Sequence record: OR142618.1
Strand: one strand, 5' to 3'
Length of the DNA stretch: 64,000 nucleotides
Shown here: one piece after another, positions 18,130 to 45,160 of the stretch
How the letters are laid out: each line of letters begins with the position of its first letter
Position numbering within the stretch: position 1 is the first letter of the stretch
Position numbers and translations under genes: made by a program
Notes under the pieces: model-generated
The model's database searches: none
Told to the model about the DNA's origin: nothing
What the model saw: the letters and a program-made list of their open reading frames with translations, nothing else

Positions 18130-18300
18130 TATTCACTTCCTTATTCATTTCTTTATTCATCTCTATTTCGTTTGTCACTTCCTTATTCATTTCTTTATTC
18201 ATCTCTATTTCATTTGTTATTGCAAATAAGACTAATTCTTATTTGCGTTTGTAATTTCATTTGTTATTGCAAATAAGACTAATTCGTATTTGCATTTGCA
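18130..18300. repeat. pyrimidine-rich direct repeats
   Basis: cttccttattcatttctttattcatctct x2; catttgttattgcaaataagactaattc x2. Confidence 0.85.
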
Positions 18301-18513
18301 ACGAAAAAGAATATGCAAATAATAACTAATCTTATTTGCATTTGCACTGCCTAGTATATGGATTGGTAGCATACTTGGAAATGGATAGTAAATAAGTAGT
18401 TGATTTGTTTATAAATTATACTTCTACACCATACAGATTGACCTTGCTATATATAGCTCGTGCGCGTGTATACAAGATGGTAAAAAATAATTTAAAAATA
18501 TTTTAAAAAATGC

Positions 18514-18637
18514 TTGACTTTCCATTACTACGACCTTAAAGTGCGAACTGTAGACGCAGTGTGTAGAGCGCTACATAGTAAGCAACGCAGAAAGTAAACA
18601 AAAAATGCTTGACGCAATGCAAACTAGGCTCTACACT
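18514..18637 (+). promoter_or_regulatory. tandem sigma70-type promoters with A-tract UP elements
   Basis: TTGACT-17-TAAAGT (18514-18542) and TTGACG-17-TACACT (18609-18637), both preceded by aaaaatgc. Confidence 0.75.
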
Positions 18638-18720
18638 GTATACAAGCTTAAGGGGTAGGTGCCCCGAAAGTGTAGTAAGTAAACAACATAATCCTTCCAT
18701 CAGCTACAGAGGTATACAAC

Positions 18721-19425
18721 ATGTCCGTACATATCACTCGTCAACGTACCGACAAACAGCACGTCCTGGCACTGGCAATCAACGGCGTGGTCATCGGCCA
18801 GACCATGGCTACTTACACCACCCCGAGCAAGCGCACCTGGTCGGCGACCGCCGAAGTCGAACTGGCAGACGGCACTGTCGTTCAGTTCGAACAGAAGGAA
18901 GTGTTCAGCGCGATCCGCATCACCCGCGAAATCGAGCAGGCGCTCGACGGCAAGGAACTGGCGGCCAAGTACACCCCGGAACCGAAAGTTCCCGGGCAGA
19001 AGGGTCCGAAACCGCTCACCGACGAAAGCCGGCTCAGCAACGCGATCGCGATCGTCAAAGCGGCCATCACCCACACCGGCTTCGACGAAGCTACCCTGGT
19101 GTTCGACGGGGTCGACAAGGCCAACTTCGAGCAGAACAGCACCTCCGTCGGCAACAAGCTGCGTCGCCTGGGCTTCGTCTTCGAACTCGGCGCCGGCAAG
19201 GCGAACAGCGGCAAGGGCTTCCTGATCAACCGCAAAGCGCAGGCCGAGGCAGAAGCTGCCGAACGCAAGGCCAAGCGCGACGCCGAGAAGAAGGAACGCG
19301 AAGAAAAAGCGGCGGCTGCCAAGCGCGAAGCTGACGAACGCAAGGCCAAGCGTGAAGCCGAACGCGCCGAAAAGGTCGCTGAAAAGAACGCAGCGATCGC
19401 CGGGGCAGCGCAGGAAAGCAAGTAA
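18721..19425 (+). CDS. paralog A of a three-member GC-rich family; K/E/A-rich C-terminal tail
   Basis: Shared domain NGVVIGQ...TPSKRTWSA...EQKEVFSAIRITR; GAGG RBS; terminator follows. Confidence 0.9.
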   Translation: MSVHITRQRTDKQHVLALAINGVVIGQTMATYTTPSKRTWSATAEVELADGTVVQFEQKEVFSAIRITREIEQALDGKELAAKYTPEPKVPGQKGPKPLTDESRLSNAIAIVKAAITHTGFDEATLVFDGVDKANFEQNSTSVGNKLRRLGFVFELGAGKANSGKGFLINRKAQAEAEAAERKAKRDAEKKEREEKAAAAKREADERKAKREAERAEKVAEKNAAIAGAAQESK

Positions 19426-19440
19426 TTGCCCAACTGCGCC

Positions 19441-19469
19441 AGAAGGGGAGCAATAGCTCCCCTTTCTTC
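19441..19469 (+). terminator. intrinsic terminator
   Basis: gaaggggagc-aata-gctcccctttc. Confidence 0.8.
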
Positions 19470-19494
19470 ATGACCACACAATCTATATACTACT

Positions 19495-19731
19495 ATGTCT
19501 TTAACTATATTTTCTATATCAGCTAATTTGTATACAATAACTTGGTATTCTGCGCAACTGACACAATGGTGTTATATAGACATAATAACACGCGACGCTA
19601 ATATTTTTATAACCTATCCATTTTATAATAACATATTTGTATCTAAAATTAGTTCTAATACAATAATTGAAGAAAAAATTGAAGAAAAATATGAACACTA
19701 TATTAGAGATATGTCGTGGAATAAGAAATGA
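19495..19731 (+). CDS. hypothetical protein
   Basis: 78-aa AT-rich ORF. Confidence 0.5.
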   Translation: MSLTIFSISANLYTITWYSAQLTQWCYIDIITRDANIFITYPFYNNIFVSKISSNTIIEEKIEEKYEHYIRDMSWNKK

Positions 19732-20391
19732 CTATATAACAGTCAATAATTTTACATATGACTACTATCTAGAGGTAAACACACCTGCGTTTTCTTTAAT
19801 GATAATTATTCCGACAGTTCCTATATTAGACAATATTTGCATTACTTTTATAAAAAAGTATTAATATGAATATATTCTTTATATCAAACAGTCTATCTAA
19901 TATACTATATCATAAAGCTTATGATATACATATGATAGATATTAAGATTAATAATTCTACTTCTATTTGGCTTACATATTCTTTCAATATTACTAAGGTA
20001 TCATTTAAATATATTATCTGATTCGTTTTCTTATTGTATGAGTTGCAATTGCAAATTACTCTTATTTGTAATTGCATATAAACAATCAGTTGCTATTAAA
20101 AGTATTTGCTGTTAATATATTATATAACAGTGCAATTGATATTTTAAAATACAGTGTGCAATACATCTTACATGTATTAAAATTTGTGTGTTACTTATTT
20201 TGCATTAATGATTAATATACCTCTCCTACAGTACAAAACTCATACTATAAACAATTTGTTCGGGCGATCGTTCTCGAAAAGTATACAAGTGAGAGATAGC
20301 AATCTAATTATACTTGTTAGTTTCTATATAGAAGGTTCTAAATATAGAAAATTTGTATATAACAAAGAATACCTCAAAGAGATTTCAGCAT

Positions 20392-20658
20392 ATGCAAACA
20401 ACAATCGTTAATGCCCTAAAATCTATTAATGTAAAGTATTCGGATATATTTTACACAAATGGTAATTTGTGTAATACCGTTACAATACGAAATATTCGTA
20501 AAAATGGTAAATTAGATTCGGCAGAACAAATTAATGTAGAATCAGTTGTGAGCAATTATTTGATTCAAAAAGATTTAAATTTGCCCTTTTCTATTCAGTG
20601 GGCAAATAATGATTGTTGCGAAGAGTATACTACACTTATTCTCTTCTTCAGAAAATAG
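20392..20658 (+). CDS. hypothetical protein
   Basis: ORF MQTTIVN... (ATG within track ORF 20353). Confidence 0.55.
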   Translation: MQTTIVNALKSINVKYSDIFYTNGNLCNTVTIRNIRKNGKLDSAEQINVESVVSNYLIQKDLNLPFSIQWANNDCCEEYTTLILFFRK

Positions 20659-20916
20659 TGTATGATTAGATTAAAAAGATATGTTCAATTGCATAGCATA
20701 TACAGATTGTCTTACTATGCGCACGGCATACATTTTAGCAAAACAAAGAATATAATGCTTTACGTAGGAAACGCAGGTCCCGTACCCGTAACATGACAGT
20801 ATATAGCGTTAAAATGTGCATTTTTTGCACGATTTTGCGGGGTATGCGTTACAAGCAATACACACATACTGCTTTTAAAATGCATGCTTACATGCGCTTT
20901 GTAGGGGGTTTAAAAC

Positions 20917-21129
20917 ATGCTTAAATTAGTTACCACTGTGCTATACAACGTCTGTGTAGCTTCGTTGATAATGATTGTGTTTGTATGCGGTATAAATTTA
21001 GTAATGTATCTCGATAACATTACTGACAATAATCCAGTTGTTATCTTTATTTCCCTTCTATCAGTTATTTATGGTGTTGCGTGGTTAAGCTATATGTTTG
21101 TTACTATCCAATTTCAGTCCAAGAAATAA
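20917..21129 (+). CDS. small membrane protein (2 predicted TM segments)
   Basis: Two long hydrophobic stretches; GGGGG RBS-like sequence. Confidence 0.65.
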   Translation: MLKLVTTVLYNVCVASLIMIVFVCGINLVMYLDNITDNNPVVIFISLLSVIYGVAWLSYMFVTIQFQSKK

Positions 21130-21144
21130 AAGTATTGGTAACAT

Positions 21145-21486
21145 ATGATAGATAAAAATGGAAATACAGAAGACTTTGATTTTGATAATGCATGCACTAT
21201 AACTGATCTGTCTGTTCCTCTTCAGCAAAAAATACAATCATATAAATTAAATAAAATATTGGTTATGGTTGCAATCCTTAAATATTCGAATATAAAACAA
21301 GAAATAGGATGTTTCGCTATCATATGGGATCATATAATAAAAATAACGGTTGAAGTAAAATGCAATCCGTATGCAGAAACACACATACTCATGCATGCGC
21401 ATGTATTTTCTAATTCCGATTCATGTACTCATAGTGTATTGCTGAATTACAGAAACAAATATTTACCCACTAATTATTATAATTAA
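21145..21486 (+). CDS. hypothetical protein
   Basis: 113-aa ORF in operon. Confidence 0.65.
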   Translation: MIDKNGNTEDFDFDNACTITDLSVPLQQKIQSYKLNKILVMVAILKYSNIKQEIGCFAIIWDHIIKITVEVKCNPYAETHILMHAHVFSNSDSCTHSVLLNYRNKYLPTNYYN

Positions 21487-21487
21487 T

Positions 21488-21895
21488 ATGGAAGATATTC
21501 TTAAAATTGCTAAACTAATCGGGTACGTAAACATACATGCAAATAAACATCTTCAGTATGATTTTAACAAAGATATGGAACATGTATGTGTTAGTGCCAA
21601 GACTAGGACAAGTATGAACGGAATAAAATACCTTTATGTAGTAATGAATATATATTATATATATTGCCAGCAAGAAAGTGTTGCCGTTATATTAAACGAA
21701 GTAAACATCGATGAAATGCCTATATTAGATAATCTTTATGCTAAACTTAATGATTTAACTACACATAAATCTGTTATAAAATTTAAATATACAGAAATAA
21801 CACAAGAACAAATAGATTTGTTGAATAATAGTGAAAGATATATAGTATATTTTGACTCTTATTTAGAAGAATACGGAATAGCTTCGTTTTATTAA
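21488..21895 (+). CDS. hypothetical protein
   Basis: 135-aa ORF in operon. Confidence 0.7.
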   Translation: MEDILKIAKLIGYVNIHANKHLQYDFNKDMEHVCVSAKTRTSMNGIKYLYVVMNIYYIYCQQESVAVILNEVNIDEMPILDNLYAKLNDLTTHKSVIKFKYTEITQEQIDLLNNSERYIVYFDSYLEEYGIASFY

Positions 21896-21908
21896 TTTTG
21901 AGGAATAT

Positions 21909-22106
21909 ATGAAAAAACAAACAGGATTTACAGATTGGCCATTGATTAGTTTGGGTACAATTATTATCTTGTGTGTATGGGTATTAATTCTACAATACAC
22001 AGAAATAAATGTACTAGAAGAAAAATGTAACAAAGTAGGTGGTATTTTTAATAACACGGTTTGCATACGGTCAGATGCAGTTATTAACTTAGATAAGGTA
22101 AAATAA
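21909..22106 (+). CDS. small membrane-anchored protein
   Basis: GAGG RBS; one TM segment followed by a C-x3-GG-x6-C motif. Confidence 0.7.
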   Translation: MKKQTGFTDWPLISLGTIIILCVWVLILQYTEINVLEEKCNKVGGIFNNTVCIRSDAVINLDKVK

Positions 22107-22107
22107 A

Positions 22108-22365
22108 ATGCCAAAACTTTACGTTAACAAAAAACATGATACCATTTATCTTCAATTAGATCATTTCTCATCCGATACTGTATCTCCAATTAATTACAAC
22201 GAAGATGTAGAATATGTAATTGATAGGATCCGTAGTCTGCACAAATCCGGATTCGGGTTTAGTCATATGAATACTCTACAAGAATATCTTACGGCAAGAA
22301 CAGAACAGGATAAGAAGTTTAAGCTTAAAGTAGAAGACTTTGAAGTAGTATCATTTAAGATTTAA
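22108..22365 (+). CDS. hypothetical protein
   Basis: 85-aa ORF in operon. Confidence 0.7.
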   Translation: MPKLYVNKKHDTIYLQLDHFSSDTVSPINYNEDVEYVIDRIRSLHKSGFGFSHMNTLQEYLTARTEQDKKFKLKVEDFEVVSFKI

Positions 22366-22386
22366 AATTATACATAATCAAAGAAT

Positions 22387-22415
22387 TTGACATTTGATGT
22401 GTATACTAGTATAAT
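22387..22415 (+). promoter_or_regulatory. perfect-consensus sigma70 promoter
   Basis: TTGACA-17-TATAAT. Confidence 0.9.
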
Positions 22416-22421
22416 TTGCTC

Positions 22422-22952
22422 ATGCTGTCGTAACAGCTACTTTGTTCCATTCACAAGCAGCTCTGTTCCATTACTGGATATTGGTAGTAGAAACTATCCC
22501 CATCGTGCCCACAGTATTGTTCTGTTAGAGACAGATTAAAACATACAAAAGTGGGTTATTTAAATTATGATTTTGGGTGCTGAAGTATAGTCGTTAGACA
22601 AGGATATGTCTAATGTTGCAAAGGACTATGCGAAACGTATTATATATCTTATCCGATATTAGATATGTAATAAAAGGATGAAGCTCTGGTAGAAACAGAG
22701 TGTAATTCTTGCTTGTATATCACACGGATATACAAAAGAATATACACACCAACTTCAGCATTGATGTAAATTTTCTAGCATAGGTATATAACATCGATGT
22801 TCCGGGATTCATTGGAAACAATGAGAGAATGATGTAATCTGAGGAAAAAGGTCCCCGCCTCGTCCATATTACGAAATGGTTTTGAGTACTTATGCCCTCG
22901 TCCTATATTGGCATATGGGTTTTATATTTCTCCCGTAATTACGGGAGAATAT
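22422..22952 (+). ncRNA. putative ~530-nt structured RNA (ncRNA-3)
   Basis: No ORF after a consensus promoter; long-range helix tgctgaagt/acttcagca, GAAA tetraloop, ends at a 22-bp palindrome. Confidence 0.7.
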
Positions 22953-23281
22953 AATTTCCTGAACCTACTTGGAAATGGACGCTTCTGCTGTGCTTCGCAC
23001 ATCATCTAAGGGCCTTCACCCTTACCGCTAAGAGCAAGAGCAAAAGCAATATAATTACAAATAAGAATTAATTATTGTTTAGTTTTATCGTAATGAATAT
23101 GAAGATAAAAACTAAACAATAATTCACATGTAGCGTTAGCTACTGTGAATATCTACTATAATATTAACCATATATGTATACAAGGGCATATTATGGCTGT
23201 TACTTGTTGACAGTTTGATATATGTGTTACACTGCATAAATCAAATGTACATTACAATGTTTTGATTATTAGGAACATACT

Positions 23282-23869
23282 ATGTCATTTTCTTTGACTG
23301 CTGCTATTAATCGATATACTAGTCTAATAGAAGAAAATTTCAAAATAAATTATCTGAAGAATTTTGCGTCAGGATATATCTCGTATAAATTACTAAGAAA
23401 TAAAACATTCCTACATACTGAAATATCACATAGACTTGATTATATAAAGGTATTTACTTCTTATACATATGTAGAAAATAATGTCAAATTAGATAAAAAA
23501 TCACCTGTTGTACATTCGTATATTTCTACTACTGAATGCTCTAAATTTAGAGTAGGAGATATAAGAAGAATGTTTTACGATTCATTTCCACGAGGAAATG
23601 TTTTTAATATTAAAGAGAATACTCAAGTTAGCTGGTCATCAGCTAATATTGGAATTTACGAGAATTCGTTTAATCTTAATTATATTTCGAACAATAAGTA
23701 TATTCGATTAGAAACAGGAGATATATTTGTCTGTATTAATGATAGTATGGTAAATGAACTACAAGAACATATGCATGTTCATTCTATATGTACTAACGAA
23801 ACAAAGAAGTTTTATGTAAGAGAAATTGATTTAAATATGCTACATTACAAAAAACACATTATGGAATAA
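23282..23869 (+). CDS. hypothetical phage protein
   Basis: 195 aa; AGGA RBS; VHSYI...GDI...PRGNV motif of a type seen in large-phage hypotheticals. Confidence 0.75.
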   Translation: MSFSLTAAINRYTSLIEENFKINYLKNFASGYISYKLLRNKTFLHTEISHRLDYIKVFTSYTYVENNVKLDKKSPVVHSYISTTECSKFRVGDIRRMFYDSFPRGNVFNIKENTQVSWSSANIGIYENSFNLNYISNNKYIRLETGDIFVCINDSMVNELQEHMHVHSICTNETKKFYVREIDLNMLHYKKHIME

Positions 23870-23872
23870 AGA

Positions 23873-24421
23873 ATGAACTACAAAGCATTAGAAGTATTTT
23901 ATTTCTTTCTAGAACATTACAAGGTAAATCCAGTAGCCGATTTGGAATTTAAATTCGAACCTTCAGGTAGTGATGACCAATCTAAGCGCAAGTCATCACT
24001 GTCGTTTGTTAAACGTATTGGTGTTCTTACTCCTTCATTTAACGAATTATACGAAGTTCAGAATCGATTCATGACAGATCTTCGAGAAATGAATGTAGTA
24101 TATAAGATAGGATTTAATTATAATGCATTCAACGTATTAGCACCTTTGTATGCAAGATATGAAAAGAATGTAAAAGAATTTCGTCGACTTTTAAAGAAAT
24201 ACTCAAGTTTCAACGAAGTAACAGAATATTACAAAAAAGCCGACAACATGTTACCGGACAATGTATACGAAACAATGAAGGAAGATTTTTCATTGTTTAA
24301 TGACGTTACTACAAAGAGGTTATCTGAAATAAAACTTTGTTATCCTAATTGGCAAGTATGGGATTCTGAACATCCCAACTGGGAAACAATAAATCAACTT
24401 TATAAGAATGCAAAGAAATAA
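23873..24421 (+). CDS. hypothetical protein
   Basis: 182 aa, followed by terminator. Confidence 0.8.
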   Translation: MNYKALEVFYFFLEHYKVNPVADLEFKFEPSGSDDQSKRKSSLSFVKRIGVLTPSFNELYEVQNRFMTDLREMNVVYKIGFNYNAFNVLAPLYARYEKNVKEFRRLLKKYSSFNEVTEYYKKADNMLPDNVYETMKEDFSLFNDVTTKRLSEIKLCYPNWQVWDSEHPNWETINQLYKNAKK

Positions 24422-24430
24422 TGCATATTT

Positions 24431-24460
24431 AGAAAGGGAATTATAATTCCCTTTCTTTTT
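24431..24460 (+). terminator. intrinsic terminator
   Basis: agaaagggaat-tata-attccctttct followed by T-tract. Confidence 0.8.
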
Positions 24461-24579
24461 GGATCTATATTAGCAAATACTAATTAATCTTATTTGCACA
24501 AATTTAATCCTATTGTGTTTTCTATTTTGAAGTGCTACATTACATGTAGTTGCATAAAACTATATACAGGAGAAATGAT

Positions 24580-25131
24580 ATGTGCTATGCATGGGATATC
24601 AAAGACGGGGATGATATCGAAGTCGAAGCAGTTATGGATGAACGAAGCTATGAGTGGACCGGCAAGTTACGTATCATCCAGTATCGGATCCAAGATCGGT
24701 GGCGTGTTATTATCAATATAGTAGAATTTTGGAGTCATTCTACTGAAAGTATACTGAAAGAACTTGGTATAGAAGCTAAACACATTACTAAAGGATATGC
24801 CACACTTAGTATGGTTCGTTTCCCGGAGGTTGATTACCTATTTAGTGTAACACCCGATAATGCAGATTATGTAACTGTTAACCGCAGTGCAGTAGATATT
24901 TCTGACAGTTGGTTTGTTGCAAAAAACATAAAAGCAGTTATGTATCATTTGGGATCTGAAATCCAGATCACTCCGTGGTTTGTGCGTAAAGATAGTAGCG
25001 AGACAAATTTCAATTGTATTGATCGATTAGTAGCTCTAGTAAAAGAGAATACTGACGTTGACACGTATCAGTACATCAAGGTAGGTTGTCCTGAGGACAA
25101 GTCATTTTACTTTGCGTGGATAGACAAATAA
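24580..25131 (+). CDS. hypothetical protein
   Basis: AGGAG RBS 7 nt before ATG 24580. Confidence 0.8.
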   Translation: MCYAWDIKDGDDIEVEAVMDERSYEWTGKLRIIQYRIQDRWRVIINIVEFWSHSTESILKELGIEAKHITKGYATLSMVRFPEVDYLFSVTPDNADYVTVNRSAVDISDSWFVAKNIKAVMYHLGSEIQITPWFVRKDSSETNFNCIDRLVALVKENTDVDTYQYIKVGCPEDKSFYFAWIDK

Positions 25132-25220
25132 TTCGTTTGCTATACGTACTAATACGTTGTATACTGTTAGTACGTATAGCAAAAGTAACACATAACGTTT
25201 TGATTTAATGGAGCCCTAAC

Positions 25221-25514
25221 ATGAAAAAAGAATTTGAATCGCGGATTCGGACTCCCTCTCCGGCGCCAGCGCCCCGGACGCCCGATGTGTGCAGCGAGTG
25301 CAATGACACCGGGAAAGTCTATGACGAAAGCGGCGCCGGTCCGTGGAGTTGCTACGCCTGTACCGGTAACCCGGAGGTGATCGGCTACGCAAACGGCGAT
25401 GAGTTGGACAACATGCTGGATGACCGCACTGCTGTTCTCTCTCCAAGGAAGACCAGTTTTCACACCGTGCCAGTGTATCGACTGATCCACACCCAAAACA
25501 AAAGTTTTCAATAA
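25221..25514 (+). CDS. hypothetical protein with CxxC...CxxC Zn-ribbon, GC-rich
   Basis: CSECNDTG...CYACTG; GGAG RBS. Confidence 0.75.
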   Translation: MKKEFESRIRTPSPAPAPRTPDVCSECNDTGKVYDESGAGPWSCYACTGNPEVIGYANGDELDNMLDDRTAVLSPRKTSFHTVPVYRLIHTQNKSFQ

Positions 25515-25562
25515 AATCGATATGGAATTGGCCCTCCGGCAAGCCGGAATAGAGGTGAAGCC

Positions 25563-25772
25563 ATGAAGACATTTTTGAAGATGCTCGCATATTGCGTGCT
25601 TGGGACATCCATTGGCATTGCCATCAGCCAATGGTTCATCTTCGTCCTAGAGATGAGGCTTGGCGCCGTGCTCTGGTACATCGTTGGCCTTGGTCCTGTG
25701 CTGCTTGTGTTTTGCATTTTGGGCAGCTTCCTTCAATGGCTGATTCATAAGAACTTGGAGAAAAAGCAATGA
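25563..25772 (+). CDS. small membrane protein, GC-rich
   Basis: GAGGT RBS; two hydrophobic segments. Confidence 0.7.
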   Translation: MKTFLKMLAYCVLGTSIGIAISQWFIFVLEMRLGAVLWYIVGLGPVLLVFCILGSFLQWLIHKNLEKKQ

Positions 25773-25843
25773 CCGACCACGCAGAGCTGCGGAGGCTGGC
25801 TAAAGAAGTGATCCGAATTGAACGAAATGAGGATGCAGCATGA
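25769..25843 (+). pseudogene. 24-aa remnant resembling the N-terminus of Ead/Ea22-like prophage proteins
   Basis: MTDHAELRRLAKEVIRIERNEDAA*; ATGA-coupled on both sides. Confidence 0.45.
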
Positions 25844-26376
25844 GCATTGACTGGAGCAAGGCACCAGAGGGTGCGACGCACTACCAACCGGAATCACGTG
25901 GCTTCCATGCGGCATGGTTCCGACTTCAAGGGGGGAAGGCTCGCGAAATGTGGGTCGTGATACCCGGCGGTGCGCTTGAGCACATCATCGATCCGACTGT
26001 CTTCGACGAGAGCATGCAGAACCTGATCGCCCGCCCCGTAGAACCTGCCACCTGGAACGGCCAGGGCCTGCCGCCGGTTGGCCTGATGGTGGAGTGGAAG
26101 GCAGGCCTTGATCACGACTGGCAGCGCGTAACCGTGCTTGCCTACGCCAATGGCGACGCGTGGTTTCAGCCTGAGGATGGCCCGTCTTTCATCGTCGGCA
26201 ACCCGGCAAACTTCAGGCGTATCCGCACCCCCGAGCAGTTGGTCGCCGAGGAGCGGGAAAAGGCGATTAATCAGATGATTTCTGATGCTGGATACGTAGA
26301 TCCGAAGATTGGCACATTTGTGGCTATGCGCAATCTCTACGACGCCGGCTACCGGCGTCGGGAGGAAGGGAAATGA
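25840..26376 (+). CDS. Pseudomonas temperate-phage-type hypothetical protein
   Basis: MSIDWSKAPEGATHY ... WNGQGLPPVG ... RTPEQLVAEEREKAI ... LYDAGYR, a typical prophage-family pattern. Confidence 0.8.
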   Translation: MSIDWSKAPEGATHYQPESRGFHAAWFRLQGGKAREMWVVIPGGALEHIIDPTVFDESMQNLIARPVEPATWNGQGLPPVGLMVEWKAGLDHDWQRVTVLAYANGDAWFQPEDGPSFIVGNPANFRRIRTPEQLVAEEREKAINQMISDAGYVDPKIGTFVAMRNLYDAGYRRREEGK

Positions 26377-26639
26377 GCAGACTGACAGCTGAGCAAGCCC
26401 GTGACATAGCGCGAGCGAAAGACGATGTCGATACTATCCTCAACGACATCGCCAAAACAGCCGCAGAAGGAAAGTACGTGTACACTACCCGCGCCTATGG
26501 GTTCGGCACAGGCGGCGGACGGCGCAGCGACGCGATCCTCAAAGTGTTGCGTAGCCTCGGCTACGACTGTGCTGTGCATGCTGAGGGACGCCAGTCTGTT
26601 GACCTGTGGCTTGAAGTGAAATGGGGAGACAAGCCATGA
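26373..26639 (+). CDS. hypothetical protein, GC-rich
   Basis: 88 aa, ATGA-coupled, GGAAGG RBS. Confidence 0.75.
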   Translation: MSRLTAEQARDIARAKDDVDTILNDIAKTAAEGKYVYTTRAYGFGTGGGRRSDAILKVLRSLGYDCAVHAEGRQSVDLWLEVKWGDKP

Positions 26640-27082
26640 CTAACAACCCCGGAGATTCAAAAATGATCGTAGAAAACGCCAAGCAAGCCGCCGAAGACTT
26701 CAAAACTTCCATGGCTAAGATTTTTCCGAATTACATCGCCAGGGCGTCGGTTTCCGATAACCTTGGTCCGGCGATGACAATTTCGTTTGCGAATGTCGGT
26801 TGCGCTTCCGAAGCCCCTAACAGCATTCTGATGAATGCGAGCGGTTACATGCGCTTTATGATGCATTTGTGTGACAATTGCGGGAATGTATTGCCAGAAG
26901 GTTCGCCGGTAGAAATTGAGCTACTAATGTGGTCTATCCCCTATCGTTCGGAAGTGATCAAGTTCCGCAAGATCAAGGGCAAGACACCAGCCGAAGCTAT
27001 GCAAAAGCTAGTCAAGTGGTTTGAAAAAACGCTGAAGCTATCCGGGGTCTGTAATGGTCTCCACGTAGGACACGCAGAATGA
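26636..27082 (+). CDS. hypothetical protein
   Basis: ATGA-coupled start MTNNPGDSK; GGAG RBS. Confidence 0.7.
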   Translation: MTNNPGDSKMIVENAKQAAEDFKTSMAKIFPNYIARASVSDNLGPAMTISFANVGCASEAPNSILMNASGYMRFMMHLCDNCGNVLPEGSPVEIELLMWSIPYRSEVIKFRKIKGKTPAEAMQKLVKWFEKTLKLSGVCNGLHVGHAE

Positions 27083-27480
27083 ACATTGTGTTGGACAAAT
27101 TGCTGTTTGGCGGTTTCATCGACCAGCACCGCAATGAACTTGCCCAGCAACAACTGAATCGGTTGTTTGCCAAGTACGGTGAGCCGAAGATTGGTATCAC
27201 ACGGGCATGCTTTCTATCTAAGCATTACGTCCTGAAGTTCCCGATTAATGACAGGGGTGAGCGGTGCAACGATTGGGAAGGTAGCTGTTCCGGCAGCTAT
27301 TTGGCACGCGGACGCTGGCTAGAAATCGGAGGCTTCATTTGCGTCATGCAAGAGCGTTTGGTTGAAGTGGATTGGAAGAACAACACCCATGCAAACTTTC
27401 CTGATTGGGTAGGCAGCATAGATTGTGGTCAAGTCGGCTACGATAAACATGGCGTTCTGAAAGCGTATGACTTCGGGTGA
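27079..27480 (+). CDS. minimal protein-kinase-like fold protein (putative)
   Basis: GITRACF, VLKFP, NDWE, VMQERL, IDCGQVG and terminal YDFG in canonical kinase order. Confidence 0.55.
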   Translation: MNIVLDKLLFGGFIDQHRNELAQQQLNRLFAKYGEPKIGITRACFLSKHYVLKFPINDRGERCNDWEGSCSGSYLARGRWLEIGGFICVMQERLVEVDWKNNTHANFPDWVGSIDCGQVGYDKHGVLKAYDFG

Positions 27481-27729
27481 AGCATGACCCCGGTCGACCC
27501 TGACAGTGGCATTAATAGCATCAGTAAAACCACAAGAAATTCTCATAGCTGAAATGGAACAGTTAAGAACAAAGAACAGTGAATACAAAGAAAGAGGTTT
27601 TTAGCGGCTAAATTGTTGCGCTTTTCTTCGATATTTAGTATATTTCTATTGACGTGCTAGGGCATTTTGTACTAATATAGCACTTGAAGGCTAGGTATTC
27701 CGCCAAAGTCTACTACCGGAGAACTTCCG

Positions 27730-28017
27730 ATGATTGTTAAAGTCGCTGCTTTCCGTAACGCTGTTGACCACCTTTTCCGCGTGGTCAATGTCGACTATCA
27801 CGCTTGCGTGCGCGCAGACGAGCTGCGCAACTGGCAAAGCATTGCAAGTCGTGTTCTAGCCGAAGTCGATGCCTTAGAATGCAAGCGCGCTAGACAGGAC
27901 GACCTCGATCAGCAGCGCCGCAGCATCGAAACAGCCCGCGAACGCATGGACCAGGCAGCGCAACGCATCGCCCAACTCGAAACCGTTATCCGTCCCGCTG
28001 TAGGGCGCATGCAATGA
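27730..28017 (+). CDS. hypothetical protein with C-terminal coiled coil, GC-rich
   Basis: TTGACG promoter at 27649; GGAG RBS. Confidence 0.8.
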   Translation: MIVKVAAFRNAVDHLFRVVNVDYHACVRADELRNWQSIASRVLAEVDALECKRARQDDLDQQRRSIETARERMDQAAQRIAQLETVIRPAVGRMQ

Positions 28018-28168
28018 GCGCCCTTCGCTTCGCCGCAATCCGGAATTGTCAAAACCAGCATGCACCAGCGCCATCAAAACTGACGATGAACATCCGCAAT
28101 GCAGATATGGAAAGAGACAAGAAATGAAATTCTAAATTACTTAAACAAACACAATAGGAGCAGAATAC

Positions 28169-28399
28169 ATGAGCCTTAAATATAATGGATATGTCTTAAG
28201 CATCAATATCCTCGGTCAAAACGAAACTATCAGTGAATACGCCTATCCTACCGATGATCCTAAAAGTGATAAAAAGAAAGCTTTTTTGGCTGCAATGACA
28301 AAATTCGTTGAATCAGATGATTTTGAGAAATTTACTAACGAAATGTATACAAATTTCTCGATTAATGTTCAAGCCCTAGTTTCTACGTCTACGGAGTAA
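28169..28399 (+). CDS. hypothetical protein
   Basis: AGGAG RBS. Confidence 0.75.
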   Translation: MSLKYNGYVLSINILGQNETISEYAYPTDDPKSDKKKAFLAAMTKFVESDDFEKFTNEMYTNFSINVQALVSTSTE

Positions 28400-28403
28400 A
28401 TTA

Positions 28404-28580
28404 ATGAACATCTTAAAACATATATATTGGGCTGTGCGTTATGGTGATTGGAATATAGGATGGGATCCGACTTGGGGTAGCAAACCTGATGAACCTTTTA
28501 TTTGGTGTAAGCCGATATATTATGACGGACATCATTGCTACCTGCGAGTAGGCTACTTTTGGATAGGAGTAACATACTAA
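28404..28580 (+). CDS. 58-aa Trp-rich hypothetical protein
   Basis: GGAG RBS; MNILKHIYWAVRYGDWNIGW... Confidence 0.6.
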   Translation: MNILKHIYWAVRYGDWNIGWDPTWGSKPDEPFIWCKPIYYDGHHCYLRVGYFWIGVTY

Positions 28581-29163: not shown

Positions 29164-29192
29164 TAATTCTCTCTCTACACAGGAGAACGGCA

Positions 29193-36818: not shown

Positions 36819-36829
36819 TTTAGTTTCTT

Positions 36830-36906
36830 TTTCATTATCAATATCTTTTTCTTTTTCAATATCTTTTTCTTTATCTTTTTCTTTATCTTTTTCTTTATCT
36901 TTTATC
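36830..36906. repeat. atctttttcttt tandem tract
   Basis: About 4 copies of (t)atctttttcttt. Confidence 0.8.
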
Positions 36907-37029
36907 ATTGCAAATACAAATAATAATTATTCTTATTTGCATTTAGTGATGTAAATAATTCTTATTTGTATTTGCGATTAATTCTTATTTGCTACAATAG
37001 ATAGAATAAGAATAATTCACATTTGCAAT

Positions 37030-37374: not shown

Positions 37375-37845
37375 ATGTCTAATGTAAGCATCCCTGCTGT
37401 AACTGTAGAGAACATCGGCACCCTGCGCATCGTGCGCACCGCTAACAAGGAGGTCGGAAGTGTGCTCGACCTAAAAGTTAACGGGGTAGTAGTAGGGCAA
37501 GCTTTCCCGCTCTACAGCACAAAAACCCAGCGTAGCTGGAACGCGAGCATGCACGCTACCGTTAACGGCGTAGAGGTGCAGTTTGCACAGGAAGGCGTGT
37601 TCAGTGCAATCCGCATTGCACGGGCGTTCGAGGATGCAGTAAAGCACGCCGTTAGCAACGGCGAACAAGGGCAACCCCTCCCCGCGCCGGCGGCGGCAGA
37701 AGCGCAAGCAGAAGCGCAAGCAGAAGCCCCGGCAGCGCAGACCGAGGATGCGCCGGAGACCCCGGCAGCCGAAGCTAAGCCCGCCCGCAAAGGCGGCAGC
37801 AAAGGCGGCAGCAAAGGCGGCAGCAAAGGCGGCAGCAAAAAGTAA
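37375..37845 (+). CDS. paralog B of three-member family; A/E/P linker and (KGGS)4 tail
   Basis: NGVVVGQ...STKTQRSWNA...AQEGVFSAIRIARA; TAGACA-17-TAAGCT promoter at 37314; GGAG RBS. Confidence 0.9.
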   Translation: MSNVSIPAVTVENIGTLRIVRTANKEVGSVLDLKVNGVVVGQAFPLYSTKTQRSWNASMHATVNGVEVQFAQEGVFSAIRIARAFEDAVKHAVSNGEQGQPLPAPAAAEAQAEAQAEAPAAQTEDAPETPAAEAKPARKGGSKGGSKGGSKGGSKK

Positions 37846-37999
37846 GCGCTGCTAACACAGGAAAGGGGCAACTGCCCCTTTCCTTTTATGTCCTAGTTGT
37901 AAACGCAAATTAATCTTATTTGCATTTGCACAAGTCATTCTCCGGTTGCATTACTGCGGTAAGATGTTAGTATATATGTAGCTATACGGAGTAATTGCT

Positions 38000-38230
38000 A
38001 TGAAGCGCAAGTACCTAAAGGCACAGTTCGAGCATGTCAGTGCCGGGCGAGTTGCAAAAGAACTCGACGAGAAGTTCAATTTCGTTGTAGGCGATAATGT
38101 ACACTACTGGGCCATCTTCGAAACTAATGTCAAACCCGAAGTTCTACAAAAGGCAATTCATGACATGAACGGTGGTGCTTACTGCCATGCATATTCTATT
38201 CCGTATGAGGATGTAGAGGAGTATCTCTAA
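38000..38230 (+). CDS. hypothetical protein
   Basis: GGAG RBS, immediately after joint promoter. Confidence 0.8.
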   Translation: MKRKYLKAQFEHVSAGRVAKELDEKFNFVVGDNVHYWAIFETNVKPEVLQKAIHDMNGGAYCHAYSIPYEDVEEYL

Positions 38231-38444
38231 TGCTCTACTATCGCGATGTTTATGCAGGTGTTTGCTGTTAAACTTGTATAGCCGGCACCAGGTCGCATAT
38301 AACACGCCTAGCCCCATGCAAACTGCGGACATGATCCATTCACGCCTGTAGCGTATGTTCGAAGAATTCGGTTGCAAGCCCGACGGTTGCTCTGCTAGCA
38401 TGTACGAGGATAAGACGCACATTACACTAGCCTGGAGCAAGTAA

Positions 38445-38735
38445 ATGGATATGTCGATTGTGAACAAGCGCTTCGAGAAAGAACTAGCGCTGTTTAATGT
38501 CGAAGTTCTCAGTAAGCGCACAGTGAATCATATAACGAAACCGAACATCGAAGTTTCGTTCAAACTAAAGGGTCATACTACTGAAGAAGAGATGACCACT
38601 GTTACTCAGCTCGCACGTCCCATTATGGAGTATGTAAGCGGACGTAGGGTGGTCTGGGCACATACCGGTCTTTGGCGCTCAATGAAAGACGACCTCGAAG
38701 TAGCAGTGCTGACAATGAAGTTATCCAAACAATAA
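38445..38735 (+). CDS. hypothetical protein
   Basis: GGAG RBS; followed by joint terminator. Confidence 0.75.
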   Translation: MDMSIVNKRFEKELALFNVEVLSKRTVNHITKPNIEVSFKLKGHTTEEEMTTVTQLARPIMEYVSGRRVVWAHTGLWRSMKDDLEVAVLTMKLSKQ

Positions 38736-38890
38736 GAGAAAGGGGCACTTGCCCCTTTCCTTTTATGTCCTAGTTGTAAATGCAAATTACTCTTATTTGC
38801 ATTTGCACAAGTCAATCTCCTGTTGCATTACTGCGGTAAGATGTTAGTATGTGTTTAGCAGTAACACATAACTAGCAGGAGCAACAGACA

Positions 38891-39151
38891 ATGGCAAAGG
38901 TTTACCAAGCAAGTGACAGCACCGGTGAGTGGCAGTGTGTTGTTATCCTCCCCGACGTTGACTCGGCTCTTCTGTACGCTACCAAGCGCTGCGCGCAAAT
39001 GGGCAAGGTGGAAGTTGTCGGTCCGTGGGCTCCTGTAATGCCACAGCATTACGCGAACATGCCGAAAGGTGACGGTGCGGAAGTGCAGTGGCGCCTCATC
39101 CCGCCGGGTTGCGGTGTAGCCTGGTACGTCACTTCGGTTAACGACAAGTAA
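38891..39151 (+). CDS. hypothetical protein, GC-rich
   Basis: GCAGGAG RBS after joint promoter. Confidence 0.8.
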   Translation: MAKVYQASDSTGEWQCVVILPDVDSALLYATKRCAQMGKVEVVGPWAPVMPQHYANMPKGDGAEVQWRLIPPGCGVAWYVTSVNDK

Positions 39152-39161
39152 GGAGACAGAC

Positions 39162-39464
39162 ATGAACCTCGTTACTCTGTGGATCAACGGGCGTGCTGTG
39201 ACTGCCCGCAAGGTTGTCAGTAAACACACTGTCCGCAATCCGAACAGTCCGATCGATATCGAGACTATCGACGTTGTTCGACTGCGTCTGCCCCGTGGTG
39301 TTCGTGCTAGCAGTTGGGCACTCCGTAAGGCAGTGTACCAACTCATGGAGCAAAGCTGTAGCTGCTCGAGAGACTGTTGTGGACACTGGTTCGGCGGCGC
39401 ACGCAAGATCTACATTAAAGGCAGAGACGTCAGTGTAGTTGCCGGGTACCAGCGCAATTACTAA
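39162..39464 (+). CDS. hypothetical protein with CSCSRDCCGHW motif, GC-rich
   Basis: AAGGAG RBS; Cys cluster. Confidence 0.8.
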   Translation: MNLVTLWINGRAVTARKVVSKHTVRNPNSPIDIETIDVVRLRLPRGVRASSWALRKAVYQLMEQSCSCSRDCCGHWFGGARKIYIKGRDVSVVAGYQRNY

Positions 39465-39719
39465 AGGAAAGGGGGCAACTGCCCCTTTCCTTTTATGTCC
39501 TAGTTGTAAATGCAAATTATTCTTATTTGCAATGATAATATCCCCGCCACGCAAATAAGAACTAATCTTAGAACAAATATTCACTTGATTTTTCTCCCAA
39601 TATAGTGTATGTGTATACCGGATAAGATTAAGTCTTGTTTGCTTGTTACATTTTATATGTTGCAATGCTAAGGCAATGATACTATTATATGTACAGTAAT
39701 ATAACCCAGGGGATATAAC

Positions 39720-40025: not shown

Positions 40026-40244
40026 TAAAGGAAAGGGGGAATTAATCCCCTTTCCTTTTATATATAATATACTTATAAATAAGAATTAATTTTATTTAAT
40101 TAAAATTAGAATAATTCTTATTTGCACGATCCCGCACTTATAACACAAGTATATTACAAAAGCAAGAATAAAATTAACTTGACACACATATGTAGAATAT
40201 AGCACAATGTGTTTATAAATTATATTACTACAGGAGTGTTAACC

Positions 40245-40915: not shown

Positions 40916-41065
40916 TATTTGGATTTGATAATTGGAAATATAATAGTAATTCTTATTTGCAATTATAATAAATTCTTGTTTACTTTTAAAATAAAAGCAA
41001 ATTCTAGTTGCATAGCTAGAGGCACTGTGCTAGTATATTAAAAAATAAAGACAGGAGTGTTATTC

Positions 41066-41531: not shown

Positions 41532-41884
41532 TTTCTGTTACTCCTGCGTTGTTTTGCTTTGTTATGTGTAGTATACGCTATGTGTGTACTAATGCAAGAA
41601 TTTTCTTCCATTTTCTTTCAAATAAAATGTTATTAGCATCTATTCTGTTATAACATTTTCTATGACTTCGTGTTTTGCAAATAAGAATTATTCGCATTTG
41701 CATTCCTACCTATCTGCCTAAATTTTAGGCAGCCTGGGTGATTGTCTCCCCCGCCCTATTACTGGTCTCTGTATAAAGATAATAGCATATTTGCATCTGC
41801 ATGCAAGCATTTTTTGTAGAATTTTCCTCTTGACATTCCTTGCTGTAGGCTACATTATGCACACACAAAGCAGGAGATACCATT

Positions 41885-42910: not shown

Positions 42911-42911
42911 T

Positions 42912-43220
42912 ATGTATAATGTATATGTAGTCCACGGAATAGTCAACACAGGCGTTGAGACTAATATTTGTGATATAGAACGTTACATTACAAGTAACGA
43001 CTTCCATGCTGTAGCAAAGTTTCTTAATTTTAAAGAACATATGGTACCAAACACACGATTAATTGTTTCTGGATTAAATACTAAAAAGAACATATTAGAA
43101 TTAGAATTAAATTTATCGAAAAAAGAATATGTAGTATCAGGTTTTAGAGTTACATCACCTGATATAAATGAATGTATTGAATATTACCTGTGTAGAAGGA
43201 TATTTAAGTTACATGATTGA
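42912..43220 (+). CDS. hypothetical protein
   Basis: 102-aa ORF in operon. Confidence 0.6.
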   Translation: MYNVYVVHGIVNTGVETNICDIERYITSNDFHAVAKFLNFKEHMVPNTRLIVSGLNTKKNILELELNLSKKEYVVSGFRVTSPDINECIEYYLCRRIFKLHD

Positions 43221-43552
43221 ATTTATATTAAAATCCCTTTTATTAACTTCAGTTGTCAGTGTTGGCATACTACTGATATTCATTATTATTTCATTATTAA
43301 TGTTGGGCTTAGGACCGATAGTTCCATTCCTTATTTAATTTTAATTATTTGCAAGCAAATGCAAATGCGAATAATTCTTATTATCCAGCAGGCTACTGTA
43401 CCTAATCTTCGTTAGATAAAATCTATTAGAATCTACAAAGTCCATTAAAACGTTCAATTGTACATGGTGGCCAGATCTGCATATACTACACACATGAAGC
43501 AAGCAAACAGCGCTTCATAAACAAACCCAAATACAGCTAGGAGTTCCAAATC

Positions 43553-43990
43553 ATGACCAAAGCAACCGTTACCGTCGAGCAATCCGCAATCAAACTGGTC
43601 CGCCGCAACCTGGAAGGGCACCGGCAGGCCCTGCTGCTGAACGGCGTCGAAGTAGGCAGCAGCGAAGCGTTCTACAAGACCAAAACCCAGCGCACCTGGT
43701 CGGCGAAGATCGACGCCAACATCAACGGCAAGGACATCGTCCTCGAACAGAAAGGCGTGTTCAGTGCGATCCGGATCGCCCGGGCGATGGAACAAGCAAT
43801 CCTGTTCATCCTGACCGACGGCAAAGAAGGCGCCGAGATGCCGGCCAGCACGCTGAGCAAGGAAGAGCAAGCCCACAACCTGGTCAAGGCAGTAGTTCAG
43901 GTTGCCGGCCACGCAGTCCAGTCCGGCGACGCTGCCCCGGCGAAGAAAGGCAGCTCGAAGAAGCGCAAAGAAGCCCAGCCGGAAGCATAA
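43553..43990 (+). CDS. paralog C of three-member family; basic tail
   Basis: NGVEVGS...KTKTQRTWSA...EQKGVFSAIRIARA; AGGAG RBS; terminator at 44004-44029. Confidence 0.9.
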   Translation: MTKATVTVEQSAIKLVRRNLEGHRQALLLNGVEVGSSEAFYKTKTQRTWSAKIDANINGKDIVLEQKGVFSAIRIARAMEQAILFILTDGKEGAEMPASTLSKEEQAHNLVKAVVQVAGHAVQSGDAAPAKKGSSKKRKEAQPEA

Positions 43991-44146
43991 TCCGGACTAC
44001 ACCGAGAAAGCACCGAAAGGTGCTTTCTCTATGACTGTTAATAACAAATATTCTTATTTGCATCTATTCTGATATAATAATAACTCTTATTTACAAATCA
44101 TACTGAATACTGTATTTTACACATTAAACATTGTAGGTAATATAAA

Positions 44147-44635
44147 TTGAATATATTTGTGACTGACACAAATCCTTATGTATGTGCCAAACATCATTGT
44201 GATGTTCATCTAAGAAAGATGATAGTAGAAACAGCACAATTGTTAAGCACTACTCATTATATAATAAACGGATATACTCCTGCATATAAACCTACTCATA
44301 AAAATCATCCATGTGCCGTTTGGATTAGAGAAAGTTCAAAAAACTATGAATGGACTTATGAACTTCTTACAAGTCTTATAAATGAATTTGAATATAGATT
44401 TGACAAACAACATGCAACTAAAATTCACCTTTCGTCATTAAAAACTATACCAAAACTCCCTAATATAGAAAGAACAGAGTTTGTCTTAGTTATGCCAGAC
44501 GAATTTAAAACAGGTAATGTAACACATTCATATCAGTTATATTTAAATGACAAATTTAAAGAATGGGCATCGAGATCTAACAGACCCATTTATGCTACAT
44601 ATACAAAGACACCTAAACCATATTTTATTAGTTGA
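44147..44635 (+). CDS. pyrimidine-dimer DNA glycosylase / endonuclease V family
   Basis: MNIFVTDTNP...HCDVHLRKMIVETAQLLST...YKPTHKNHPCAVWIRES...NYEW...F..VMPDEFK. Confidence 0.8.
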   Translation: MNIFVTDTNPYVCAKHHCDVHLRKMIVETAQLLSTTHYIINGYTPAYKPTHKNHPCAVWIRESSKNYEWTYELLTSLINEFEYRFDKQHATKIHLSSLKTIPKLPNIERTEFVLVMPDEFKTGNVTHSYQLYLNDKFKEWASRSNRPIYATYTKTPKPYFIS

Positions 44636-44707
44636 AATATAATAAAAATGATTGACATGTACATAAGATCATATTATGCTGTATAAAACAGCAAGGAGTA
44701 GATATAC

Positions 44708-44941
44708 ATGTACCGCAAACTGAATACAAATCCACGCCCAATGCCAAAAACAAAGGCAATTCCAACTAAATTTGTCATTCAGTACACTGCACGGAATAAA
44801 GCAACAGAAAGTTTGTTCAAAAAAAGAACTATTACATTACATGCGTTTGGGCGTCTCGATGCACAAACACTCCTATCGAAACATATCCGAAAAAATAATT
44901 TGGAATTAGGTGTAATTATTGATTTCGGTGAAACAGTTTAG
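44708..44941 (+). CDS. basic hypothetical protein
   Basis: TTGACA-17-TATGCT promoter at 44652; AAGGAG RBS; terminator at 44952-44979. Confidence 0.8.
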   Translation: MYRKLNTNPRPMPKTKAIPTKFVIQYTARNKATESLFKKRTITLHAFGRLDAQTLLSKHIRKNNLELGVIIDFGETV

Positions 44942-45160
44942 TTAGTGACACAGGAAAGGGGGCAGTTGCCCCCTTTCCCATTATTAAGTCAAATGCAAAT
45001 GCAAATACAAATTATTCTTATTTGCACAGATCAGACCATCCATTCCAATAACATTACTAACTTGGATGAAATGGCTTACTACAATGAACTTTGAATACTA
45101 AAAAGTACCTAAGAAGTAATTCCAGTTGTATCTAAAACACTATGTGTTATTATACATATA

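Follow-up and report, generated by a model that had tools for sequence, protein, structure and literature searches.

A palindromic hexamer element between early-gene cassettes of the jumbo phage Callisto, a putative operator and recombination substrate

A window of 64,000 nucleotides from sequence record OR142618.1, belonging to the Pseudomonas jumbo phage Callisto, was analyzed. Between 18.2 and 45.0 kb of this window we found a palindromic element of 25–31 bp that separates early-gene cassettes and has not been described before. The element is intergenic, oriented along transcription, confined to the early domain, kept at depth in divergent relatives and a recurrent end point of cassette change. 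On balance we lean towards the view that it forms the core of a boundary module of terminator, palindrome and early promoter, in which it would serve as a putative protein-binding operator or insulator of the early regulon and also as a recombination substrate.

Callisto is a relative of phage PA5oct and a member of Wroclawvirus, the sole genus of the Arenbergviridae. Genomes of the PA5oct group measure 285–288 kb, and that of Callisto comprises 286,854 bp with 416 proteins. Window coordinates equal record positions minus 186000 (window 18000–30000 is 100% identical to record 204000–216000), and the whole genome was put together from the record for genome-wide counts. For PA5oct a direct terminal repeat with an estimated length of 39,080 bp and a need for host RNA polymerase were reported, with gp34–gp105 as the highly transcribed, host RNA polymerase-dependent genes at 5 min (PMC7318152). 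Position 1 of the PA5oct terminal repeat (PA5oct 1–39080) aligns to window 9729, and in comparison with PA5oct the equivalents of gp34–gp105 occupy roughly window 16.8–48.1 kb. The motif domain at 18.2–45.0 kb lies within the long terminal repeat and within the stretch strongly transcribed early in PA5oct. It is a mosaic of about 30 cassettes of 26–52% GC that share one orientation.

Occurrence and anatomy of the element

A previous sequence-only reading of the window had reported 18 exact half-sites GCAAATAAG and one full palindrome GCAAATAAG-N7-CTTATTTGC. Both were recovered where they had been placed. The 9-mer occurs in 18 copies compared to 1.09 expected, a number reached by none of 100 shuffles, and the perfect 25-bp palindrome is present at 18222–18246 only; with up to three mismatches, 11 occurrences are found against 0.08 expected. 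Genome-wide, 18 of the 21 exact 9-mers and all eight copies of ATTTGCATTTGC fall within window 18.0–45.1 kb, which is 9.4% of the genome. The other three 9-mers are located elsewhere in the genome. The genome-wide motif scan suggested in that reading was carried out with an iterated 41-nt weight matrix trained on the sites of the motif region. It returned 30 sites of at least 20 bits, compared to none in ten Markov-simulated genomes, and 31 sites of at least 12 bits in the motif region. With copy numbers far above those of shuffles and Markov genomes, and with the higher-GC relatives described below, chance or AT content as the cause is ruled out.

The 22-mer form gave no match in a scan of IMG/VR. 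The 16-mer form matched 71 contigs there, 69 with a single match and two with three tandem copies; none of them bears two matrix sites of at least 18 bits. A full-text literature search for the motif strings returned unrelated primers only, and the PA5oct paper describes just −35 and −10 motifs as well as terminators (PMC7318152).

Although 67% of the region is coding, 29 of the 31 sites are intergenic. The claim that all copies are intergenic is thus correct apart from two sites, one of which falls in a doubtful minus-strand coding sequence (CDS). This call (39138–39584, CDS GBBBJNDB_00354) overlaps plus-strand open reading frames (ORFs), a terminator and the element, and is probably spurious. 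With regard to orientation, 12 of the 13 strongest sites (at least 30 bits) point along the gene direction.

The palindrome proposed earlier is real but represents just one form of a hexamer array. In its general form, convergent GCAAAT/ATTTGC hexamers are set in a strict 6-nt register around a 7-nt WWTTCTT core, giving the consensus GCAAAT-N-WWTTCTT-ATTTGC with conserved G and C positions. The first ATTTGC after the core (R1) is present at 26 of the 31 sites with at most one mismatch and a second one (R2) at eight. The left side exhibits one to three GCAAAT-type hexamers (L2 at 18/31, L1 at 9/31). Exact GCAAAT...ATTTGC pairs in the region are spaced by 13, 19 and 25 nt only, measured from start to start, and direct hexamer pairs occur eight times at 6 nt compared to single occurrences at five other spacings. 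None of those spacings was found in the other 260 kb of the genome.

The sequence-only reading had further placed most copies just after a terminator and just before a sigma70 promoter. In a strict search within 25 nt, a GC-rich terminator hairpin stands 9–21 nt upstream of the element at 8 of the 31 sites, one of which (18263) is the neighboring palindrome itself, and about three more terminators are recognized by eye. Random intergenic positions show such a hairpin at a rate of 1.25%. The word "most" was overstated, as about two thirds of the copies have no recognizable hairpin within 25 nt. In canonical modules (e.g., 37859–37973 and 38738–38850, both with TTGCAT-N16-TAGTAT) a sigma70-like promoter follows after 15–22 nt, and the element centre is found near −60 to −68 from the inferred start. 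Outside of these modules, 50–175 nt separate the element from the next plausible promoter, and a generic promoter scan of this AT-rich region yielded 59 hits with 55.8 expected, i.e., chance level. The promoter claim applies to the canonical modules. The composite of terminator and promoter is present at 37859–37973, 38738–38850, 24431–24560 and 34473–34580 and in four consecutive gaps of the metagenomic contig L123 discussed below.

An UP element of sigma70 promoters is an A/T-rich tract at about −38 to −59, at a fixed distance from the −35 box and without conserved G/C. This assignment was rejected for the present element: its G/C positions are conserved, its AT-rich part lies at about −55 to −76 from the inferred starts, and its distance to the −35 box ranges from 15 to about 175 nt.

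Conservation and cassette change among relatives

Two clusters of three (18222–18339) and four elements (36916–37026) precede the genes of paralogs A and B, as the earlier reading had noticed. These genes are true paralogs (E 4e-16), and a third, paralog C, is located at 43553–43990. A profile of the N-terminal domain shared by A, B and C was searched against 1.84 billion proteins and gave distant homologs on contigs of uncultivated relatives with 45–51% GC, which share most genes with Callisto at just 30–55% amino-acid identity. On three of them, L122, L123 and L127 (13.3 kb in total, 47–49% GC), 19 element sites were found compared to 0.01 expected from shuffles. Their consensus, GCAAAT-GCGAAT-TATTCTT-ATTTGC, matches that of Callisto, including the hexamer register. 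In L123 the order terminator, 14–18 nt, element, 16–22 nt, promoter TTGCAT-N16-TAGTAT, Shine-Dalgarno sequence and ATG is repeated in four intergenic gaps in a row, one of them with the promoter variant TTGCAA/TACTAT. Since these AT-rich 25–31 bp are nearly unchanged at 48% GC next to non-coding DNA that cannot be aligned, we see good evidence in these sequences that the element itself is under selection. The cassette order of L123 differs from that of Callisto. Blocks homologous to Callisto start and stop at element edges (L123 3624–4367 corresponds to window 38775–39531, and 5370–5908 ends at 38801), with a novel cassette in between.

Among close relatives, the region of Callisto was compared with those of PA5oct, Deifobo, MIJ3 and Ettore. 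All four retain 26–28 sites in syntenic positions. As the sequence-only reading had proposed, indel breakpoints were mapped: among the six pure indels of at least 100 bp in the motif domain of the five genomes, three are bounded by the element on both sides, one on one side, and two are unrelated to it. An 877-bp cassette of Callisto (37983–38737) lies between two 125-bp repeats of terminator, element and promoter, and a hybrid module is found in PA5oct. A further cassette of about 700 bp, present in PA5oct, Ettore, Deifobo and MIJ3 and missing from Callisto, is flanked by two element copies; the Callisto junction follows directly on ...TTCTTATTTGCA. A 445-bp cassette occurs in MIJ3 only and has two copies of ATGCAAACTATTCTTATTTGCAC at its flanks. 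The 368-bp GC-rich insert of Deifobo and MIJ3 begins 12 nt after an element. Breakpoints away from elements were located inside the GC-rich block at 25.2–28.2 kb and at about 28.4, 31.2 and 33.8 kb; the element is therefore a frequent, but not the sole, site of change.

RNA-seq contigs (2020 runs) mapped to 36.5–42.4 kb contain the 877-bp deletion joint independently, with 54 nt common to both sides, while contig ends at repeats are not readable as transcript ends. An apparent joint from 40061 to 36909 in the same data was rejected as cross-mapping of the PA5oct ortholog of the 45.0-kb module.

The earlier suggestion of a recombination core that marks cassette boundaries is supported by the cassettes flanked by two copies and by the reordered divergent relative with blocks ending at element edges. 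Shuffling of cassettes as such has comparative support, but no sign was seen of a dedicated site-specific mechanism beyond ordinary homologous recombination between repeats. Such a mechanism, in which a phage enzyme would capture and reorder cassettes at a palindrome on each 3′ end, similar to integron attC sites, appears very unlikely to us. It would agree with the roughly 30 cassettes of mixed GC (26–52%) in one orientation, with the element at the cassette 3′ end behind a terminator, with junctions that repeatedly fall directly after ...CTTATTTGCA, and with a cargo gene common to unrelated Pbunaviruses (see below). However, the 50 region proteins that were scanned yielded no recombinase, the cassettes have promoters of their own, and a second element copy is missing at one insert. 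One crossover took place past the element, inside the 125-bp repeat, with a mosaic typical of homologous recombination. The junction position does not discriminate, because homology ends at element edges under any mechanism. Dedicated site-specific recombination is not needed to explain the junctions.

Recombination linkers are known from T4-like phages, where promoter-early stem-loop (PeSL) elements were described (Arbiol et al. 2010, PMC2839356; Comeau et al. 2014, PMC4122927). The present element could be a recombination module of this type and nothing else, with a palindrome that has no binding role of its own and persists as part of a spreading terminator–promoter unit. Over about 125 bp there is hardly any difference between the modules at 37.9, 38.8 and 39.5 kb, recombination between them is documented, no extra constraint on the element is visible among the close relatives, and PeSLs of T4-like phages are known to behave in this way (PMC4122927). 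Nevertheless, most copies have just the 25–31 bp element in common and unrelated flanks, and its sequence is kept in relatives of 47–49% GC where the surrounding DNA is unalignable. A strict hexamer register of 6 nt would hardly be expected without a sequence reader, and the same applies to terminator-less arrays of three to four copies upstream of one gene family in several genomes. We consider this explanation rather unlikely.

Proposed function and candidate binding protein

In the reading that we favor, the element would be the conserved core of a module that separates small cassettes in the host-takeover and anti-defence part of the terminal repeat. A sequence-specific and probably oligomeric protein would read the GCAAAT/ATTTGC hexamers in their 6-nt register around WWTTCTT. 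Bound between a terminator and the next promoter, it would control or insulate the early units jointly, either as on a regulon-wide operator or as a stoperator-like roadblock; it may act as a roadblock behind each terminator or by switching promoters. The approximately 30 copies of 25–31 bp in one orientation would at the same time provide the homology for recombination that shuffles cassettes.

An insulator or a regulon-wide repressor fits better than a classical upstream activator because of the location behind terminators and the orientation bias. Class-I or classical upstream activation is disfavored, since the distance to the promoter is variable and not phase-locked. The operator for a dimeric regulator of the early regulon that the sequence-only reading had suggested is plausible in view of architecture, orientation, early-domain confinement and the arrays before a conserved gene family, but no DNA-binding protein was found among the region proteins. 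The nucleoid-organizing site suggested as an alternative gained no specific support.

A host factor, i.e., a nucleoid protein or an activator touching RNA polymerase, could instead use the sites to boost immediate-early promoters before any phage protein is made. Early genes are transcribed at once and depend on host RNA polymerase (PMC7318152), and the canonical element centre, about 60–68 nt upstream of the inferred start, is at a typical upstream-activator position. In contrast, the perfect palindrome is absent from Pseudomonas in a search of 185,579 species genomes, which gave 36 scattered single matches at chance level, many sites are far from any promoter, and the promoter spacing follows no helical phase. 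The element is not known to resemble the consensus sequences of Fis, IHF, Vfr, Fur or Anr. We regard a host factor as unlikely. Replication-origin iterons, partition sites or packaging signals would agree with the two clusters of three to four repeats, which lie beside repeat tracts within non-coding DNA of about 1.1 kb, and with the location in the terminal repeat. Against this stand about 20 more single copies, one per intergenic gap over 27 kb and tied to terminators and promoters, so that such a function is highly improbable.

As for the protein that would read the element, the A/B/C family may be a candidate, although this is more speculative than the operator itself. It is suggested because its genes lie downstream of arrays of three to four elements in Callisto as well as in L122 and L123. 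The Callisto arrays are located 350–475 nt upstream of A and B, and an element with three left hexamers is found 168 nt upstream of C. In L122, four sites precede the homolog by about 460 nt; in L123, four at 29-bp spacing precede a homolog by about 300 nt; and in L127, four are found about 920 nt upstream with two ORFs intervening. The orthologous 1-kb leader of L128, the contig with the most divergent homolog examined, has palindromes of the same hexamers, TTGCAAATTG-N13-CAATTTGCAA and TTGCATTT...AAATGCAA. The protein is also present on L119 and L126, where no site was found, and on L120 with only TTCTTATTTGCA upstream. DNA-binding proteins that regulate their own gene classically leave such a trace, a repeat array that recurs with its downstream gene across divergent genomes; for A/B/C this amounts to an association and no more.

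In PA5oct, the ortholog of paralog A carries the annotation of a structural protein detected by ESI-MS/MS. The model of the A/B/C domain shows five strands and a helix (pLDDT 74) and is by prediction not a ribbon-helix-helix fold; a protein atlas search with A/B/C gave no lead. As an observation on the family, the C-terminal tails of A (19243–19361, charged, KAEA-type) and B (37679–37841, KGGS-type) are encoded by short GC-rich tandem repeats, and RNA-seq contigs contain 12-nt length variants in the tail of B (37698, 37787).

Several points speak against the operator model. Pfam detected no DNA-binding family and no transcription factor among the 50 region proteins, and the A/B/C fold has no match above noise (Foldseek against PDB, BFVD and AFDB clusters; VIA-align wide). 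The distance between element and promoter is not fixed: it measures 15–22 nt in canonical modules, reaches about 175 nt at other sites and does not keep to the helical phase; positions relative to the transcription start are inferred ones. Strong consensus promoters at 22387 and 42475 and some terminators of the region have no element nearby. The matrix enrichment within the region is partly circular, because the matrix was trained there, while the exact-word counts and the independent contigs are free of this circularity. Finally, the substitution rate among the four close relatives is 2.7% in the element, 2.9% in other intergenic DNA and 3.3% in CDSs, a comparison that is uninformative on purifying selection at 3% divergence; as no lower rate is seen at this distance, constraint is visible only at greater divergence.

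A bolder idea, to which we attach little probability, is that A/B/C represents a new kind of sequence-specific DNA-binding protein with one member in the virion. It would coat the hexamer arrays at all cassette boundaries of the terminal repeat, arrive with the DNA or be made first, and organize immediate-early transcription; together with its sites it would form an exchange platform for anti-defence cassettes. If true, a lytic jumbo phage would possess, in these proteins and sites, a functional equivalent of the integron.

Neighboring features and comparison with known systems

The sites and the adjoining features are compiled in Table 1. Degenerate hexamer repeats form a pyrimidine-rich tract ahead of each cluster, and a GC-richer leader of about 350 nt separates the cluster from the gene.

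Table 1. Element sites and adjoining features of the motif domain (window coordinates; scores from the weight matrix).
Position	Strand	Feature	Remark
18110–18217	+	Pyrimidine-rich tract with degenerate 6/12-nt repeats (CTTATTCATTTC-like), running into cluster 1	6 copies, 12/18-nt spacing
18222–18339	+	Cluster 1, three elements (18222–18246 perfect, 18269–18293, 18315–18339)	Spacing 47 and 46 nt; 382–475 nt upstream of paralog A
18721–19425	+	Paralog A, 234 aa	Conserved N-terminal domain, charged tail
20045–20069	+	Single element, 33.8 bits	
24431–24497	+	Terminator hairpin 24431–24456, element 24473–24497 16 nt later	Next gene 24580–25131
28632–28656	+	Single element with extra ATTTGC, 38.7 bits	
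29571–29612		Two overlapping weak elements	23.3 bits on minus strand, 17.3 on plus strand
30477–30536	+	Terminator 30477–30502, then element 30512–30536	21 bits
31941–31965	+	Single element, 36.2 bits	19 nt upstream of TTGACT-N17-TACATT; just past ncRNA002-like region
33693–33717	-	Weak element, 22.4 bits	
34473–34534	+	Terminator 34473–34492, element 34510–34534 (26 bits)	TTGAAT-N17-TATAGT at 34552
36824–36905	+	Pyrimidine-rich tract with TWTCTT-like hexamer repeats, running into cluster 2	
36916–37026		Cluster 2, four elements, mixed orientation	349–435 nt upstream of paralog B
37375–37845	+	Paralog B, 156 aa	Basic KGGS-repeat tail
37859–37973	+	Canonical module 1: terminator 37859–37884, element 37899–37929, promoter 37946–37973	Promoter TTGCAT-N16-TAGTAT
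37983–38737	+	Variable cassette, missing from PA5oct and MIJ3	Direct repeats of ~125 bp (modules 1 and 2) at its ends
38738–38850	+	Canonical module 2: terminator 38738–38759, element 38776–38806, promoter 38823–38850	
39469–39531	+	Terminator, then element 39506–39530	Four relatives have an extra ~700-bp cassette exactly after ...CTTATTTGCA
39618–39642	-	Weak element, 20.6 bits	
40033–40125		Terminator 40033–40053, elements 40075–40099 (-) and 40101–40125 (+)	Extra 445-bp cassette of MIJ3 here
40936–40983	+	Two overlapping weak elements	
41677–41701	+	Single element, 34 bits	
43361–43385		Element with three GCAAAT-type hexamers	168 nt upstream of paralog C
43553–43990	+	Paralog C, 145 aa	
44037–44094	+	Two elements downstream of a terminator-like hairpin	Hairpin by eye
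45001–45025	+	Last element, 34.3 bits, three left hexamers	368-bp GC-rich insert of Deifobo and MIJ3 12 nt after

Counterparts of the PA5oct transcripts ncRNA001 and ncRNA002 are located at 17857–18092 and about 31450–31915, and each region stops shortly before element sites, the first before cluster 1 and the second before the site at 31941. In PA5oct each of the two accounts for 1–5% of the phage reads in published RNA-seq. Rfam and tRNA scans of the window gave no match. Outside of the window, Callisto encodes folE and queE homologs (record 77021–77710 and 136018–136890), and a preprint reports that PA5oct DNA is resistant to several restriction enzymes and probably contains G with a 7-deazaguanine-type modification. 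A protein reading the element would then encounter modified G within the GCAAAT hexamers.

Among the cargo, the gene straight after the element 24473–24497 (24580–25131, +) is 93% identical to PA5oct CDS EST35_0052, which is taken to be the published anti-END1 inhibitor PA5oct gp52. This protein inhibits END nucleases and is homologous to gp88 of Pbunavirus 14-1 (bioRxiv 10.1101/2025.03.31.646159). For the N-terminal half of the Callisto product, homologs at 35–39% identity were found in about 230 Pbunavirus genomes. On the basis of the EST35_0052 match and these homologs, at least one cassette carries a validated counter-defence gene common to an unrelated phage family. The 68-aa product of an early ORF at 32708–32914 (+) scores just below the Pfam cut-off for ribosome modulation factor (24.7 compared to 27.9 bits, E 2.5e-5) and may, judged from this similarity, be a phage-encoded ribosome-hibernation factor. 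For the gene at 44147–44635 (+), which bears the label "DNA binding protein" in Deifobo, Ettore and MIJ3, only a sub-threshold match to a pyrimidine-dimer DNA glycosylase was obtained (T4 endonuclease V-like; 21.2 compared to 23 bits).

Blocks of 42–52% GC occur at 25200–28200 and 46000–48000 in this phage of 27–30% GC. The segment 25531–25839 is 89–93% identical to DNA of unrelated Pseudomonas phages of 50–84 kb (BR153a, PAO1_Ab17 and others), and this similarity indicates a recent import from phages that share its host. The GC-rich block varies between close relatives through replacements with breakpoints away from the element. Window 1–13100 (+) contains about 35 tightly packed plus-strand ORFs of 83–120 aa with hardly any intergenic space and no element, and constitutes a differently organized part of the same terminal-repeat neighborhood. 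Outside of the early domain, from 58953 to 63866 (−) and beyond, lies a portion of a huge minus-strand gene (record 244953–256526, about 3,850 aa).

Host-takeover and counter-defence genes, almost all of them ORFans, collect in the early region of jumbo phages, and the element supplies a grammar of discrete units for this region, marking cassette boundaries for annotation. One DNA site and one candidate protein family offer a handle on the timing and insulation of early genes in a jumbo phage that depends on the host polymerase. Movement of genes such as the anti-END nuclease inhibitor into and out of genomes would also be explained, which is relevant to therapeutic PA5oct-like phages.

Some features of the element are shared with other repeated sites. 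In integrons, each of many cassettes of mixed origin and common orientation ends downstream in an attC site, an imperfect palindrome at which gain, loss and reordering take place. Callisto is similar in its imperfect palindromes at cassette ends and in the changes at these sites. The element is, however, unlike the attC core sites (RYYYAAC ... GTTRRRY), promoters and terminators are part of the cassettes themselves, and plain homologous recombination could account for the junctions. An attI site was not found, Pfam detected no integron integrase among the 50 region proteins, and for the rest of the 416-protein genome the annotation, which was the source used there, names no integrase. The operators of omega of pSM19035, ParR/ParG and MetJ consist of 6–8 bp repeats in strict register upstream of the regulator's own gene. 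Units of this size in register, both direct and convergent, and arrays before a small conserved gene are found here as well, while the predicted fold of the A/B/C candidate with five strands and a helix differs from their ribbon-helix-helix.

The stoperators of Cluster A mycobacteriophages such as L5 and Bxb1 (PMC6550527, PMC9283540) resemble the element with 20–30 copies in short intergenic regions, mostly in one orientation to transcription, some of them at promoters and most not. They are 13-bp asymmetric sites of a monomeric immunity repressor, distributed genome-wide in temperate phages. Callisto in contrast is a lytic phage with a pseudo-palindromic site of 25–31 bp in a single 27-kb early domain, and Pfam found no repressor-like protein among the 50 region proteins.

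Of the systems described so far, PeSL comes closest, and the module can be regarded as resembling a PeSL with an added operator-like palindrome. Both are composites of a terminator stem-loop and a sigma70-type early promoter that are repeated in the intergenic gaps of ORFan-rich hyperplastic regions and adjoin insertions, deletions and replacements between close relatives. The stem-loops are also of a similar type, A3-4G3-loop-C3T3-4 in phage nt-1 and AAAGGGG-loop-CCCCTTT in Callisto. PeSLs belong to T4-like myoviruses and were described with merely a generally AT-rich stretch between stem-loop and promoter, whereas Callisto, an Arenbergviridae jumbo phage with a long terminal repeat, has at that spot a hexamer-array palindrome of 25–31 bp with conserved G/C, which also occurs alone and in arrays without terminator or promoter. 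The lineage, the location in the terminal repeat and the distinct operator-like palindrome, also found solo and in arrays, thus differ from PeSL, and the idea of regulatory sequences as recombination linkers is extended past the T4 group.

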